Shown piece after piece: positions 1 to 59,650 of a stretch of 64,000 nt of DNA. The translations under genes and the position numbers were made by a program. Under the pieces are notes generated by a model. It was not told the DNA's origin, did no database searches, and saw nothing but the letters and a program-made list of their open reading frames with translations. Source of the DNA: Salpingoeca rosetta (taxonomy: Eukaryota > Protista > Choanoflagellata); NCBI GenBank assembly GCA_033442325.1, contig JAWQFM010000008.1, positions 1,658,287-1,722,286 on the forward strand, in the 5' to 3' direction. Numbering within the stretch: position 1 is the stretch's first letter; the number at the start of each line of letters is the position of its first letter.

Positions 1-4901
<4,901 letters not shown>

Positions 4902-5047: not shown

Positions 5048-5122
5048 ATGGCACCGTCAGTTTTCTACACTGCACTTGGCGCGAACAACGTTGCTGAACA
5101 GCAGGTGTGTTGTGTGTGTGTG

Positions 5123-5186: not shown

Positions 5187-5220
<34 letters not shown>

Positions 5221-5808
5221 GTTGTGTGTATGTGTATGTGTATGTGTGCGTGTTGTGTGCATGTGTGCAGCGATCTGTGGTGCAATCGTCTTCTGTGTCC
5301 TTTGCTTCGTCATTCAGCGCGCAGAGATCAACAGGTGCCATCACATCCTGATGCCAATCATCATCATCACCATCTTCGTCGTGCATCGATGCACGTCACT
5401 TCTGTCTTGCACAGCTACTGCGACGTTTGGGCCGTGGACATGGATGCAACGGAGCTGGAGGACGCGCCCGTGGATGACGTGCTCGATGCCATCTTTGGTG
5501 TGCTTCCAGGCAGCCACGCCAGCTTCGGCAGCAAGGATCGCCAGGCTGGCAACGACGGCCAAGGAGACCGCAGCGATGCGGACGGGGACAGCGAGGACGC
5601 TGATGACCTAGGACAAACGCATCAGGAAAAGGAAACCCGCGAAGTCCTCAAGGAGCTCGATACCCTGCTCAACACGCCAACCGTCATGGTGAGGCGATCT
5701 CGGCGTGCCATCACAATGCCGGAGCGCACACTCGAATGGCATATCTGCTTTTGCCAGTCGCTTGCTTCATCCGCGCTCACAATGCATGTAGCCCAGTGTG
5801 CATGACAC

Positions 5809-44246: not shown

Positions 44247-45417
44247 TGCCAGTGTTGACGGTGGTGGTAATGGTGATGGTGGTGGTGGTAATGGTGGTGG
44301 TGGCGGCGACAGCGCGATTGCTTGGCGCTGTTGTGAGTGTTGTCTGTAGTCGTGTGCATGCTCAAGCATGTCGGTGAGGTGCGCTCAGGTGTGCTCGTTT
44401 TTCGTTCATGTGGTGCTTGTGTTCGTTTGCTCATGTGTGCCGTTGTATCGTAATTGACAACATCCAAACCAATGAACAACCCAACCCATCAGCGGGAGCC
44501 AGTGAAAGAACAGAAGCAGTGGTGGTTGTGTGTGTGTGTCACGTCGGGGTATCCGCGACAACGGTGGCTGTCATGCTTAGTTGCGTGTGTCGTGTGCACG
44601 TGTCCCTCTCATTTTCTCTGTGCTTCGTTGTTGTCTTCCACTCGTAAGAGGCAATGACTGTTAACCTTTGATTTCTTGCTAGAAGACAGCACAATATCAT
44701 GACGTGACAGGCCACCACCACCACCAAGCAGGAAGCAGCGGCAAGGAGCGCAAGAAAACACACACACACACACACACCACACATACACAAATGAAACAAG
44801 CATACACGCTTGCGTGCCAGTCACGGAACCACACAAAAGTGGCACGTGGTGACCTGGCACAGTATGCATGCCAAGGAAGGGAAAGCGCAATCATGCCGTG
44901 CTTGCAAGCAACAGTTGCACGCAAAGCAAGACAGCAGTTATGGGCAGGGGGGGGGAAAGCAGCAAAATTGGGGAGCACAAGCGCGGAAACCGATAAGGCT
45001 GAAAGCGCAAGAACAGGAGGGAAAGGGGGAGGGGGTAGAGGCGCGGAAGAAGTGGCACAAGAAGTGCCACCACCACCAGCATTTGCGACGGTTACAAACA
45101 AGCGAGGCATGGGAAAGGGAAGGGCGTCGAGTAGGAATAGGATACACACACACACGCGCGCGGAAGCACCACCATCGACGAGTGATACAGCGGGGAAAAC
45201 AACAAGGCCTCATCCAAAGAAGAAAGCGACAGAGCAACACACACACACATCATCATCATCGTCCTTCGATTATATGAAACTCCAGCCATCAAAACCGTGC
45301 ACAAACAGGATACATCACACAATACACGCACAGCCACAAACGCACACACTTGCCAGTGCACAAGGCACAGGCAATCGACATGCATACATACACACAGTGT
45401 CCGTCCCAAAGAGAACA

Positions 45418-47000
45418 TCACCAGTTGCCCGTAAACATAGGCTGGAAGCCTTCAAGCGACTGTGGTGGTTGACTCAACTGTACCACGTTAGCATACTGTC
45501 CTGGTGCCATGGTCACGGCAAAGGCGGGGGCGCCCTGAACCATCTGATGCTGCTGTTGGTGGTGGGGGTGCACCATCTGATGTTGCTGCTGCACCTGTTG
45601 CTGCTGGACGTGTTGTGTCTGCTGCTGCTGTGTGGGTGTCTGGAACGTGGACGTTGCATACTTCTTGTGTGAGGTCTTTGACTGCGAAGCAGCGCGCTTT
45701 GCTCGCTCGAGTGCACAGTTGTGCTTGGCCTTCTTGGGGAAGAACCCGCACTTGCCACACTTGTACTCGCCCCGCTTCGTTGCCGTTCCCTTTCGCGCTT
45801 TGCTGCGCGTGGGGCGTGCGGTTGTGTGCTCGCTGTGGCTGTTGGAGGTCGATGCCATGTGCTGCTGCTGCTGTTGCTGCTGCTGTGTGGGCTGCGGCGC
45901 GGGCACATGAAGCACTTGGCCTTCCTGCTGCACCGTATGCCCAGCCTGCGTTGCAGTAAACACGTGATGCTGCTGGTGGTGTGACTGCTGCTGCTGCTGC
46001 TGCGGCTGCTGCATGACTTGAGATTGTGGGACAAACGCCTGTCCGTTCACCACCATGCTGTGTGGCACCATCATCACAGCTGTTGTGGCCGCTGTAGACG
46101 TCGGAGCGGCAGTCGTCTGGGATGTGTCTTGCACCACCTGCACGTCAGCGGTGGCGGACCTGCCCAGCGGCGATGAGGTGGCAAACCCGTTGACAGAGGT
46201 GTCGTGGTCGCCCTGGGACATGGCGGAGGACGAGCTCATGTCGAGCGCAGATGTGTCGCTCACGGTGCTGTCGTCCAGCAGGCGACGCTTCGAGTGCTGC
46301 ACGCAATGAAACAAAGCACAAGAGAAACGAACACGCAACTTCCGTGAGTGACACAATAAGAGCGAGAGAGAGTGTGTGTGTGTGTGTGGGTGTGCGTGCG
46401 CGCGTGTGTGCGTCTCAACCGTCGTGTTACATACATACATGCATGCACGCATCGTGCACGCGAGTTCAAGCAAGAGCAAAGGCATGCCCCACCTTCTTTT
46501 TGGCACCGCTGCCTCTGAGAATGTCTGCAGTGTGGCAGGCGTATGCGTTGCCAGGGCTTGACATCATGGCAAAGGGGCTGTTGACAGGGAATGGCTTGAG
46601 CGACGGGGACTTGAACTTGGGTGTCGCTGTGGTTGGGAAGGCAGTCAGGCCACCTTCAAGCGTAAACTGGCCAGGGCGTGGCGGAGAGAGCACATACTGG
46701 CCTGAGGGAGACATAATCATGGACGAGTCCAGCTGCGCAGCATCATGTGTTCATACCGAGAATGCAAGTGAGCAATCGTTAGCACAAAGCAACAGCACGG
46801 CACAAGCAAGCGAAAAGGAATGGAAAATAGCGCGTTGAGGGATGGGGAAGAGGGGGGGGGGGGTTGATGCATACATCAAGGAGGGTGGGTTGGCGGGGAG
46901 AGCATGCAACATAAAATACCACAACGACGACAACAACAATAAGAACCACGACGACGACGACGACAACAACAACAGCAACAACAACAGCAACAGCAACAGC

Positions 47001-47050
<50 letters not shown>

Positions 47051-47565
47051 GATGGCAGGAGCGCACGGGGGTACCAGCACGATCAACGCACCACCATGCT
47101 TTCCATGCCGCTGATGTCGGCATCAAGGCCAGAGAGGAGCGTGGAGGCCGTCGCGGTAAACTCCGACTGGAAGAGTGGATCGTTGGGGTTGAAGCGGGTG
47201 AACTGCCGCGGGGGCGTGAAGAGCATATGGCGGCCAGGCTTTGGGGTACGGCCAGGTGTGTTGCCGCTTCGCAACATGGAGTCTGCGACGCGCCTGTTGA
47301 GGATGAAAAGAACATGCACAGGATGATACCAAGCAAGCAGGTGTTGCGCGGGCGATGTGGTGTGAGGGAAGGATATGTGTGGACGGAAGGGAAGGCATGA
47401 GGATAGGTTGAGTGTGTTCTCAAGACATACTGGCACGACGATGGGCAAACAAGACGAGATACAGGCTGATGGATTGACAGGCGTGGACAAGAAGAGAACA
47501 CAACATGCGGTCAAGGAAGCGGCAATTGGTGGTGACACTTACGATGGAGAAAGCGGGTCTGACAT
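45418..47565 (-). CDS. Uncharacterised disordered protein with clustered CDK sites, a KRRL motif, Q-rich tracts and a C-x2-C-x8-H-x-C zinc knuckle
   Basis: gccaccATG at 47565 (MSDPLSPS|gtaagt). Phase-compatible exons at ~47293-47095, ~46732-46493 and ~46296-45418. Contains KRGEYKCGKCGFFPKKAKHNC. Confidence 0.75.
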
Positions 47566-48242
47566 GGTGGCTGCTGATGTGTTGGTCGAAACTCGTGAGG
47601 AGGAAGAAGGAGAAGAAGAAGAAGTGGTGTGGGGGTGAGGAGGGATTGTTGAGGAGAAGAAGAGACGATCAAAGACTTGCAGTCGTTGGTTTGTTGATGT
47701 GGATGTTCAAGTGAGAGAGACGGAGGGTGAAGTTGCTCTGTGGCTGTGATCGACACCGTCCGAGGTGTGCTTGTTGTGGTTGTTGTTGTTGTGGGTTGTG
47801 GGCTGTTGTTGTTCTCGCTCTTGCTTGTTGATGCTAATGGGTGAAGTGACTGGTGTCTTGGGTGGCGGTGGGTGCGCTTGCTTGCTTGTCTTGGTTGCTG
47901 TTGGGGATTTCCGTTGGAAAGTCTGGGTGGACTGCACGCGCGGTTTGCTTTGTCGAATGCTCAAGGGGCGCAAGCTGGGAAGTGAAGGAGTGCGAAGCGA
48001 AGAACAACGCAACCGAACGGAGCAGACAGAGGTGGGGGGCACACAAGAGGACGGCGGGGCTGTTGTTGTGTCTGACTGCCTGCTTGCTTGCTTTCGTGCA
48101 AGCACGCGAGCGAGCGAGAGGGGGGAGAGAGAGGCTGAGCTGACTGATGAGTGCGTGCGCTTGTGTGTGCGGTGATTGTGCGGAAGGACGGAGAGTGGGG
48201 AAAGTGCTTTTGTGCAACCGCACAAGCGACCAGCAGAGCGTG

Positions 48243-48451
48243 TAACGGTGGTTTCGGTTGCAACGGTTGTTCAAACTTCCCGCGGGCAACGGCGTCATGT
48301 TTTCCGCGTCGAAAACACCGTTTTCCGATCTTTCCAACGAATTTGCTGGCGTCAGCAAAATATCAAATCAGGTTGATCCTGCTTTTGGATGTATCTGCGA
48401 CACACGACATATAAAAATATTCAAGAACAGCAACATCACAAAGGCGCCAAA
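48243..48451. promoter_or_regulatory. Putative cell-cycle promoter module: CDE/CHR-like element, MYB/MSA-type AACGG sites and an E2F site in a divergent intergenic region
   Basis: The minus strand at 48285-48270 reads CCGCGG-GAAG-TTTGAA. AACGG cores occur at 48243, 48261, 48287 and (reverse) 48318. TTTGGCGC is on the minus strand at 48451-48444. Confidence 0.5.
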
Positions 48452-48501
48452 GCAGAGAGACGAAGGACGAAACGAGAGCGAACAGACACAACACACACAC
48501 A

Positions 48502-48535
<34 letters not shown>

Positions 48536-48673
48536 GCAAGAGGAACACGAACGCGCGCGCAAGGCACCGCAGAGGAAGCAACAGCAGCAGGAGGAGCAGC
48601 AGGAAGGACGTTGGAGGAGGAGGAGAGACTTTGAACCGAAACGCACAGGCCACGAATCACAGCAGGAGGCAGC

Positions 48674-54590
<5,917 letters not shown>

Positions 54591-55324: not shown

Positions 55325-58255
55325 TCACCTCGGCATGTGCGCGCCAGCGTGCGTGTGTCCAACGGCAGAGCGCCCAGCCTCCTTTGGAAGCGAAAGCGGC
55401 GAAAACACCAGTCCGTGCAACGGCTGTTGTTGCTGCTGCTGCTGCTGGTATTGCTGCTGTTGTTGTTGTTGCTGCTGGTGCTGGTATTGCTGCTGGTAGC
55501 TGTACTCACTCGTCTGCTGGACATGAATGCGCTCCTGCGTGTACTGGCACTGCTTTGTCGTGCTCGCTAGCGCGTGTGTCAGCGATGATGAAGACGATGA
55601 CGGCGGCACGTCGCGCCCAGTGACGACGCGTTTCTGCTGCTCGTGGTACTGCACATTCAACGTGTCAATGGCGGTGACTGATGATGATGCTGGCGCTGCT
55701 GCAAGTGTCTTGGCTGATGGTGGTGGCGTGTGTCTGTAAAGCCTCTCCTGGCTCTTGGGCGAGTACCCAAGTGCCATCTGGATGTGTTCCGTGATGGGAT
55801 ATGGCGCAAGCCCCTCTCGCCGCGACGGGCCTTTGTAATACATGCGCTGCTCCGACGATCCGCCCTGGTGCTGATGCTGCTGGTCGTTGTGGTGATGGTG
55901 ATGGTGCTCTTGCTGGTGCTGCTGTTTGTGGTTGTTGGTGTGCGCGGAGGATGCGTGCGTGTATGCGGGCGTGCCTGTGTTGGAGACGGTGTCGCCTGCA
56001 AACCCTGGCGAGCTGAACTGCGGCGACTGATCTGCGTTAGACACATAAACGCGGGAGCGGTACTGTCGCGATGACGCGGACGAGCGGGACATGGTGGATG
56101 GGGCTGCGTTGCTCATGACGCTGCGGACAGACGCTGTCGTGGCGGACGAGGCAGAAGAGGCCGTGCACGGTGTGCGCACGACAGCATGCGGCGGGGTGAA
56201 CACCGATGCCATCGAGGTGTCGGTGGGCTGCGTGTCAAAGGCGGCCGACAGCGGAATCACGCCAGCACACTCCTCTGGTACTGAACTGCAGATGGAAACA
56301 CCAGGCACGTCCCTGCACCGCTGCTGCTGCTGGTACTGAGCTGGTGCGTCTTGCGTGCGCTGTGCGTGAGCGTCGGTAGCATGAGACTGGTGTGTGTGCA
56401 CTTGTGGTGCGTGGGTGGCGTAAGTCTGCTGCTGCTGCTGCTGCTGTTGAGTTGCAGCGTCGTTGAACGAGAATTGGGGCAACGACGACTGCTGCTGCTG
56501 TTGATACTGTTGTTGATGTCGGTGCTGTGCTGAGGACACTGCCACCGCGGCTGTTGCTTGCGCCTGGCCCGTCCCTGCCGGTGCCACCGACGCCATTGAG
56601 GTGGAGGCGGTGTTCGTCGACAACGGCGAAGCGTTGTGCGGTGTGACGAGCGCCGACTGTGGGAAGCGGAAGGGCAGGCGCGTCTGTGGCGTGTCAGCGG
56701 CAAACGAGGGCTGCCTGCCGAGTGCACGCGAGCGGGCGCGACTACCGGTGGTCGACGTCCGCTTGGGTTTCTTCGGGCCACGCGTAGGGCTCCCTTTCCC
56801 CTGCAGGGTGGAGTCATTCGTGTTGGGGAGTGACATTAGTGAGGGAGTTGTGTGAATGCGCGTGCGTATGGGTGTGAATGTGCGTGCGTGCTTGTGCGCG
56901 CGCATGTGTGTGAATGTGCGTGCGCGCGCGTGTGTGAATGAGGGGTATTCGTGTACCTCAGGCGAGTCTGGATGGAACAGGCTCTGTTTCTGGTTTCGTC
57001 TGTTCGTCTCTGTTCGGGTGCGAATCTTCACTTTGGACACTGAAAGACAGGCGGTCGTGATGTGGTGCAGCAGTGGTGGAATGCGGCACAGTGAGCGGGC
57101 AGATGTACCGCGCAACATAACCGATAGCGTCATCATCAACAGTCACCTGTTCGAGAAACAATGCAGACTCGCACAACCAATGCCCTTCAGACAGAAAGAC
57201 AAATACACACAAACACAGGGCACCATGCACACACACGCACACATACACACCTGAGGCTGCCTGCAGGGACGAGAGGTCGATGCTTGACCAGCGAAACACG
57301 GCGCGTTTGTTGTCGTGGCGTGACGGAGGTTCACTGACTTTCGCAATCAGGTTCAGGCTCATCAAGATGTTGCTGATGTCATACAGGCGGCGGATTTTCG
57401 CTGTTGGAATAGGAATGCGTGCACACGCGCGCGTGTGTACAACAATGGGCGAATGAATGGGCGAATGAATGATTCAATAAATAAATCAAGCAAGCAAGCA
57501 AGCGAGCAATCAATCAATGTGTTTATGAATTAATGAGCGATGTGAACGAATCAATGCATGCAAACTCAGCAACAACAGGCAAACGAGCACAAGCATCGCC
57601 ACCACCACCACCACCAACAGCACTGAACGCACTCTTGCTTCGCTTCTCCTCGGGGCAGCCTGGCCCAAAGATGAGTTTGTCTGCTGCCTCGTCCATGCTC
57701 ACCATACCGTCCTGAGCACGAGAAGAGAGATAAGTGAAGAGAGACAAGAGCAGTGTTGATGAACGACAAGCTGAGACAAGAGACCAGGCGACAGTCCAGA
57801 AACACTGGAAGTATGCTGCAAGCTGATGCTTGCAAGAGAGAAGCAAACAGGCGCGACGACAAGAGGGCACGGTTACATTGGCGTGGGCGTACCGGTGCTC
57901 GCATGAAGAGCATGATGAACCGCTGTGCAAGAACACCCAGCGAACGCTCTTTCTTCGTCGCCTCGCTCTCTGCACACACAGACACCCACGTGTGCAAAAC
58001 ATGGCGTGCTGTGAGATGGGAAGAGGGCAACACGACATATGCACAGACACGGCAGTGGCTGCATTGGTTGTTTGCATTGCATGTGTATGTGCACGTGGGT
58101 GCGTGTAGAAGCAACACCACACACCTTGAAGCGGAGACTGTTGGACATATGATTGTGTGTGATTGATGACGCAGCGAGGCATCATGATGAGGGAGAACAG
58201 CACAATTGAGACGATGTTGTTATGCGCACATGTGATGGTATCGGGCAGACAACAA

Positions 58256-58287
<32 letters not shown>

Positions 58288-58309
58288 GCAACAGCAACAA
58301 CAACAACAA

Positions 58310-58374
<65 letters not shown>

Positions 58375-59650
58375 GGTGGGGTGTTTCACCTGCTGTGGAG
58401 CGTCAAGCGTGTGAGATGGGCGAGTGGGGCTGTCGAGGTGGGTGATGGACAGCGCCTGTGGACAAAAGAGGCAGCGCAGCGCACGTTGAAAAGCGTGTGA
58501 GCTGAAGGGAAAGGCCGCACATACAACAACCAGAACAAGAACAGCAACCATAACAGCAACAATGAAATTAAACGAACAGCAAAGAGTCAGACGACACCGC
58601 GTGCTGACTGCTTTGCACGCGCACAGCCGAGACCTCATCACCGCACCTTGAGCTTTGCGAGCGTCCCGTTGATGTTGTCAAATCCTTTCCAAATGTATGT
58701 GTTCTTGCCCTTGCGCGTGACAAGTTCCAGCCCTTCAAACACATTCACCACGTCATAGATGCGACGCCGACCAACACCTAAACAGAAAGGAAGAGGAGGA
58801 GGAGGAGAGAGAGAGAGCGTATGGTTGCGTATGTGTTTGTGTATTTGTGTTGGGTGAATGTTGCAATGTATGTTCTGCTGCTGCTGCTTCTTCTTCTTCT
58901 TCTTCTTCTTCTTCTTCTTCTTTCTTCTTCTTCTTCTTCTTCTTCTTCATCATCATCATCACCACGTGTGATGTTGCAACGACCAAGAGAGGACGAGGGC
59001 ATACCGAGTTGTCGTGCCACGGTGTCCAGGGCAATCTCAGCGCCAATGTCGCCTTTGCAAATGTCGCAGAACCTGGCAGCACGCCCACGTGAGTTGGCAC
59101 AATTAGGCACACACAGACACACACGCGCGTGCGCAGACACTCTCGCGCACACGAGCACACAACAACAAACGCACAACAACACACAGACACCATCACACAC
59201 GCGCATATGCACACGGACGGCACTCACTGCGTGGTGATGCTCATGAGGGTATTCCCCTTGCGCCCGCTGCCCTGCTGACAATCGCCAGTTGTTGGCGAAT
59301 CATCTGTCTGAGGCGATGAAGACGACTGAAGGTTTGGTTTTGCGCGCGCAGGCGACGCCTGCAGCTCTTGCGCTGCCACCGCCGTCAGCGTGCGCAGTGC
59401 CTGAAAGGCCAAAACAAAGGGCTGGTCAGTGGCGCAAGTGATTGTGCACTGCAGCAGAAACAACAACAGCCGTTGTAGCAATCAACACGCACAATTTGCG
59501 CGCGTGTTGTCCCTCACCGCATCACCCCCACACTATCTCAATCGCTCAGGTGCACGCCCACACACACGCCCACACACACACCTACTCACCCACACACACA
59601 CACACACACATGCACACATACACATACACACACACACACATGCACCTACC

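Follow-up and report, generated by a model that had tools for sequence, protein, structure and literature searches.

A candidate E2F/LIN54-type composite site in a divergent promoter of the choanoflagellate Salpingoeca rosetta

A hybrid E2F/LIN-54 motif is known in worm, fly and human (PMC3093354), promoter-proximal in position and made up of a GC-rich E2F-like half and, only a few bases further along that strand, a CHR-like TTYGAA. LIN54 recognises the consensus TTYRAA, its tyrosines reading the DNA in the minor groove (PMC4974476). For the mammalian CDE/CHR promoters of CDC25C, CDK1, CCNA2, CCNB2 and PLK1, PMC3287175 and PMC4176359 describe a GC-rich CDE, a 4-nt spacer and a canonical TTTGAA, with the CDE distal to the gene; by definition, a CDE is a GC-rich element that precedes the CHR on its own strand, with the 4-nt spacer between them (PMC4176359). 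The element described here is of a known kind, DREAM/MuvB and the hybrid E2F-CHR site being well described in worms, flies and mammals. For choanoflagellates and Capsaspora, we found no open-literature description of cis-elements of the CHR or DREAM type. The site lies in a window of 64,000 nucleotides, the whole stretch of DNA analysed, and positions below refer to that window unless a contig or locus is named.

Mapped over 45000-50500, the reads and contigs of three RNA studies reveal two divergent transcripts, with RNA depth essentially nil across 48312-48495. Because the transcripts diverge and RNA depth is nil between them, 48180-48490 is a ~300-bp divergent promoter common to both genes. 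The initial annotation had supposed a promoter in a unicellular holozoan, and this was borne out, the organism being S. rosetta and the sequence lying between two divergent transcription start regions. The genome contains one copy of a 271-bp core, for which Rfam gave no match, and a repeat or ncRNA origin of the promoter was rejected on these grounds.

The minus-strand transcript (exons ..46296, 46493-46732, 47092-47292 and 47542-48173/48178, with GT..AG introns on the minus strand) was assigned to PTSG_03404 by 100% identity in a homologue search. Its product of 447 aa is S/T-P-rich and predicted to be disordered, with one C2HC-like knuckle; Pfam returned no family, the Atlas no useful neighbour and the homologue search one weak match only, and judged by its sequence PTSG_03404 is an orphan disordered protein. 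The plus-strand transcript starts at or before 48561, with RNA depth rising from 48496 on (48496-48679 bin), and is spliced at 48983/49297, 49814/50002 and 50158/50446. It has an acidic first exon, and UQ_con exons lie downstream at 53126-53290 and 53583-53801; taking the exons to be linked across an N gap, we assume that this is a ubiquitin-conjugating (E2) gene. Assembly gaps (N runs) at 50760-51500 and ~53990-54560, flanked by long CA repeats, interrupt it, so that the window does not give its complete model. Spliced models were inspected one exon at a time, and two contig joints with inserted letters (45571/47771 and 48602/49311) were discarded as cross-mapping at GTT/CAG repeats. At 49326, an A>G difference appears in most reads (8/12 and 7/13) of two 2026 RNA runs and is absent from the older contigs; it could be a strain allele or RNA editing.

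The features of the locus are as follows, the motifs being read directly from the sequence.
45418..47565, minus strand: coding range of PTSG_03404, four exons, start codon 47565, stop 45418.
47542..48178, minus strand: exon 1 of PTSG_03404, with start codon 47565; RNA contigs end at 48173/48178 (approximate TSS).
48243-48248, plus strand: MYB-type core TAACGG, within the left-hand unit of a 13-nt direct repeat, TGYAACGGTKGTT, and the left arm of a dyad.
48261-48266, plus strand: MYB-type core CAACGG, separated from the CHR by 3 nt.
48275..48270, minus strand: CHR hexamer TTTGAA, a LIN54-type site by sequence, part of genome match C8:1706556-1706569.
48283-48277, minus strand: E2F-like core GCGGGAA, with a single base between it and the CHR; the window site is GCGGGAAgTTTGAA.
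48287-48280, minus strand: GC-rich CDE GCCCGCGG, followed by the 4-nt spacer GAAG (CDE and spacer together 48276..48287).
48287-48292, plus strand: MYB-type core CAACGG, abutting the CDE.
48300-48308, plus strand: degenerate E2F-like box TTTTCCGCG, outside the E2F consensus TTTSSCGC.
48318-48322, minus strand: MYB-type core AACGG (AAACGG, not YAACGG), in the right arm of the dyad.
48411-48418, plus strand: TATA-like box TATAAAAA on the plus-gene side, its function presumed.
48443-48451, minus strand: consensus E2F site TTTGGCGCC (TTTGGCGC(C)), a perfect TTTSSCGC match.
48561..48983, plus strand: first exon of the plus-strand gene, start codon 48674; contigs extend 50 letters 5' of 48561 over a CA repeat.

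All the motifs named in the initial annotation were found in place, the plus-strand AACGG cores beginning one base further on than had been given. Its CDE, 4-nt spacer and CHR are present on the minus strand at 48287..48270 as GCCCGCGG-GAAG-TTTGAA, and the arrangement CGCGG-GAAG-TTTGAA is among 63 genome matches to SGCGG-N4-TTYGAA; the hexamer TTTGAA agrees with TTYGAA and with the LIN54 consensus. Two E2F sites had also been proposed. The one at 48443-48451 stands as a perfect consensus, at or just before the start of the plus-gene transcript, and the box at 48300 (TTTTCCGCG) is E2F-like only. The composite points toward PTSG_03404, its CHR being nearer to that gene than its CDE is; taking contig ends as approximate TSSs, the CHR lies ~92 bp upstream of the RNA 5' end of PTSG_03404 and ~200 bp from the start of the plus gene. 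Around it, an imperfect 22-nt dyad (48235-48256 / 48310-48331, 77% complementary) places the CDE at its centre, and GTTTTCCG occurs twice, 21 bp apart, at 48299 and 48320 (second copy 48320-48327). A CRE/ATF-like half-site, TGACGCC, is also found twice on the minus strand of the same promoter, at 48292-48298 and 48350-48356.

Compared with the mammalian CDE/CHR, the GC-rich CDE, the spacer length, the canonical TTTGAA and the distal position of the CDE are the same. Mammalian CHRs, however, lie on or very near the TSS (PMC4176359), whereas here the distance is that given above. Mammalian promoters of this class are usually, though not obligatorily, TATA-less with an upstream CCAAT, whereas this one has a TATA-like box and neither CCAAT nor ATTGG in 48180-48500. 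Nor is either flanking gene a known G2/M gene, or recognisable as a mitotic or other known cell-cycle gene, and FOXM1-type activation is not assumed. The likeness to the DREAM/DRM hybrid motif of C. elegans, Drosophila and human (PMC3093354) extends to the order of the two halves, their shared strand, the short distance between them, the promoter-proximal position and the presence of the factor genes. It differs in that the element is that of a choanoflagellate, in that its commonest local form is GCGSSAAA abutting TTYRAA, and in that only part of the S. rosetta neighbours are recognisable cell-cycle genes.

The initial annotation had called for a genome-wide examination of motif enrichment and spacing, and in the 55.4 Mb assembly the composite proved over-represented, with a sharp spacing preference. 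The pattern GCGGGAA-N0-10-TTYGAA gives 37 matches, against 13 for a control in which the pattern is reversed. Counts for spacings 0 to 10 are 1, 9, 6, 7, 2, 0, 1, 3, 2, 3 and 3, so that 22 of the 37 pairs fall at spacings 1-3, nine of them, the window site included, at spacing 1, compared with ~2 per spacing at 4-10. Relative to spacings 4-10, spacing 1 is enriched with P = 2e-4; for spacings 1-3, P = 4e-7. At position eight of the E2F half the window site has G, where most spacing-1 sites have A. A broader class, GCGSSAA-N0-3-TTYRAA, has 109 matches against 54 in the control, which corresponds to ~0.02 sites expected in the ~30 promoters we estimate for the window (109 sites per 55.4 Mb). Among the matches listed for this class the spacing is bimodal, with 41/100 at spacing 3 and 35/100 at spacing 1, and with 0 and 2 rare. 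Its recurrent 14-mers include GCGGGAAATTCGAA, GCGCGAAATTTGAA and GCGGGAAATTCAAA; since their flanks are unrelated, they count as independent sites, not as members of a repeat family. The classic SGCGG-N4-TTYGAA shows a modest peak, its 63 sites comparing with a mean of ~46 across the other spacings 0-9 (P = 0.014), and in nine of them GAA opens the spacer, giving a GCGGGAA core that abuts the CHR.

These counts bear directly on chance co-occurrence, in which a genuine promoter would hold a composite and AACGG cores that nothing binds, picked out as familiar motifs. Single motifs in the 64-kb window are not enriched (TTYGAA 27 seen, 36 expected; YAACGG 47 seen, 51 expected), about half of the broad composites can be put down to background (54 in the control against 109), and no cell-cycle role is known for either flanking gene, all of which speaks for chance. 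Two or three composites also appear to be coding (L055, L062), while most lie in promoter-like, AT-richer DNA beside CA/GT leaders. On the other hand, the GCGGGAA class at spacing 1 numbers 9 where about 1-2 would be expected, so most of these sites are not background; the window site sits inside the RNA-free promoter gap, at the centre of the 22-nt dyad and beside the 13-nt direct repeat; and an AACGG cluster such as that around it arises in just 1% of shuffles. We therefore regard chance as unlikely.

ORFs and Pfam matches were collected beside the composites. Most first exons have no domain, and the only cell-cycle genes recognised in this way encode a Polo-like kinase and TIMELESS. At the Polo-like kinase gene (Pkinase and POLO_box; L064:4950-5770 = C19:1203509-1204329), the composite GCGCGGGAATTTTCGAA stands directly before a CA-rich leader, the order being an inverted CCAAT box (ATTGG), 30 bp, GCGCGGGAATTTTCGAA, TTTTGAGGTTTGAGGG and the leader, which holds a GT..AG intron (L064 5352-5750) ahead of the start codon at 5762; this layout is strikingly like that of an animal G2/M promoter. 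The TIMELESS composite, TTCGAATTTCCCGCC (L070:4994-5008), lies 210 bp upstream of the start codon at 5211 (L070:4870-5215 = C7:50142-50487), in a promoter that also has TTTGAA at 4875 and a consensus E2F site, GCGCGCCAAAA, near 5111 (L070). When the coordinates of known cell-cycle loci were compared with the lists of sites, CDC45 gave the one coincidence, which taken alone is not significant: a broad-class composite at C26:181850 (-) lies ~1 kb upstream of the exons at C26:179093-180875, and CDC45 probably carries the element on this sequence evidence. A second CDC45 match, in L067, was set aside as weak and low-complexity, the real CDC45 being on C26.

Most of the neighbours that can be named are not cell-cycle genes (O-methyltransferase, CRAL-TRIO, ROCO, ankyrin, HECT, MYRF, acyl-CoA dehydrogenase), and by locus coordinates against the site lists the exact composite is absent at the cyclin, kinesin, NDC80/KIF15, PIF1, MCM and SMC loci. 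Among known mitotic genes, where the initial annotation had proposed to look for the element, Polo kinase has the composite, and cyclins, kinesins and NDC80 lack it in its exact form. In mammals, a CDE is present in just 23% of CHR promoters (PMC4176359), and S. rosetta promoters with a CHR only may for this reason exist. Taken as sequence evidence, the link of the composite to cell-cycle genes is suggestive, not proven. By eye only, an MRE11-like exon ('FWGHEHKCEIDP') was noticed in L034 (C1:722115-725137); ~400 bp away is a GCGGGAA...TTCGAA pair whose halves are 10 nt apart.

The same neighbours bear on whether MuvB need be invoked at all. Plain control by E2F/DP, of the G1/S type, would make GCGGGAA and 48443-48451 ordinary E2F sites and TTTGAA incidental. 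The perfect E2F site at the start of the plus gene fits such control, as do TIMELESS and CDC45, two of the three composite-bearing genes identified, which are S-phase genes in animals; CDE sites are, moreover, half E2F sites (PMC3287175, PMC4176359). It leaves unexplained, however, the peak in TTYGAA spacing after the E2F core, as well as the excess of additional CHRs lying up to 100 bp from composites (6 seen, 1.6 expected), and Polo kinase is a late-cycle gene in animals. We consider E2F/DP acting without MuvB to be less probable even than chance.

The S. rosetta genome encodes candidates for the proteins such a site would need. Its LIN54 has two CXC domains, CXC-N 'CLKLYC' and CXC-C 'CLQRYC', which align to 5FD3, a structure of human LIN54 with DNA, and both counterparts of the human tyrosines Y536 and Y610 are kept. 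LIN9 is encoded, and the match to LIN37 is weak. E2F_TDP domains are found at at least six loci, RB_B (pocket protein) matches are present, and three adjacent Myb repeats at C24:307337-308071 form a three-repeat MYB candidate in a genome with many Myb-domain genes. LIN52 and RB_A were not detected by a six-frame search, which is weak for split genes. LIN54, LIN9 and a three-repeat MYB, the factors that the initial annotation had asked for, are thus all represented, the last as a candidate. Within the window, 9 kb from the promoter, two E2F_TDP winged-helix domains lie ~1.3 kb apart on one strand (57330-58781, minus); from its sequence, the pair looks like an atypical two-domain E2F7/8-like repressor gene.

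Plant MSA elements are bound by R1R2R3-MYB in G2/M genes of tobacco and Arabidopsis, and their extended consensus is about YCYAACGGYY. The promoter resembles them in having several AACGG cores within ~80 bp in a genome that encodes a three-repeat MYB candidate. Nowhere in the 64-kb window apart from the four cores within 80 bp (48244-48322) do three or more AACGG cores cluster, and 5/500 dinucleotide shuffles (about 1%) reach four in 80 bp. Unlike MSA elements, none of the four matches the extended consensus in the form given here: their contexts are gtgtAACGGtg, ttgcAACGGtt, gggcAACGGcg and gaaaAACGGtg, none with C two bases before the core. AACGG does not cluster genome-wide, triple YAACGG giving 70 matches against 113 in the control, mostly in coding sequence or tandem repeats; nor is it associated with the CHR, CHR-N0-6-CCGTT giving 107 where the control gave 260. 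One AACGG was seen near the 22 other composites, with 5.6 expected, if anything a depletion. On the counts near composites and beside CHRs, a combined MYB and CHR grammar as a class was rejected. A minority of mammalian CHR promoters, furthermore, have MYB sites (PMC4176359), and repeated AACGG is accordingly not a plant-only feature. The earlier idea that plant MSA and animal CHR grammars are combined here is not supported by these results, AACGG being linked neither to composites, nor to CHRs, nor to itself, and the MSA consensus going unmatched. The cluster is an oddity unique to this promoter and reflects no general rule.

A stronger version of MYB involvement may be imagined, a pre-animal Myb-MuvB 'double-lock' in which four MYB sites in dyad symmetry round the composite would hold MYB on the DNA beside LIN54, driving G2/M expression of PTSG_03404 as a lineage-specific CDK substrate or cell-cycle regulator; we give this little credence, somewhat less than we give to control by E2F/DP alone. 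Least probable of all, the AACGG/CCGTTRC and GTTTTCCG repeats would be sites of an unrelated factor (another Myb/SANT or an ETS-like protein) for housekeeping or cell-type expression, the cell-cycle reading being wrong here, which the organised repeats (TGYAACGGTKGTT twice, GTTTTCCG twice at 21 bp, the dyad), the abundance of Myb-domain genes in S. rosetta and the lack of a link between AACGG and other composites would allow, but which leaves the composite itself, of an enriched class, unaccounted for and for which no alternative factor could be named.

The reading that we favour, with moderate confidence, is that the composite is a DREAM/MuvB-type hybrid site for E2F/DP and LIN54, placing mainly PTSG_03404 under proliferation-linked control. 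In the predicted assembly, 48180-48490 would be a nucleosome-free promoter common to both genes, an E2F/DP dimer would occupy the GC-rich half of GCGGGAAg-TTTGAA, and the two LIN54 CXC domains would make their contacts in the minor groove, at the TT and AA steps of TTTGAA. Linkage of E2F/DP to LIN54 by a pocket protein would give repression in non-cycling cells, and MuvB, possibly with three-repeat MYB, would activate later in the cycle; this timing is predicted, as are binding and the choice of PTSG_03404 as the gene controlled. The separate E2F site at 48443-48451 would serve the plus-strand E2 gene. On either side of the composite, the four AACGG cores may offer MYB direct DNA contacts, at this promoter alone.

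For the locus itself, with the 'plant plus animal grammar' removed, the value is the narrower one of an uncharacterised gene pair predicted to be under E2F/MuvB control. More broadly, the element stands at Polo kinase and TIMELESS at least, and probably at CDC45, in S. rosetta, suggesting that it and its spacing predate animals. If this is true, the origin of animal cell-cycle and quiescence transcription would be testable in a transfectable choanoflagellate.
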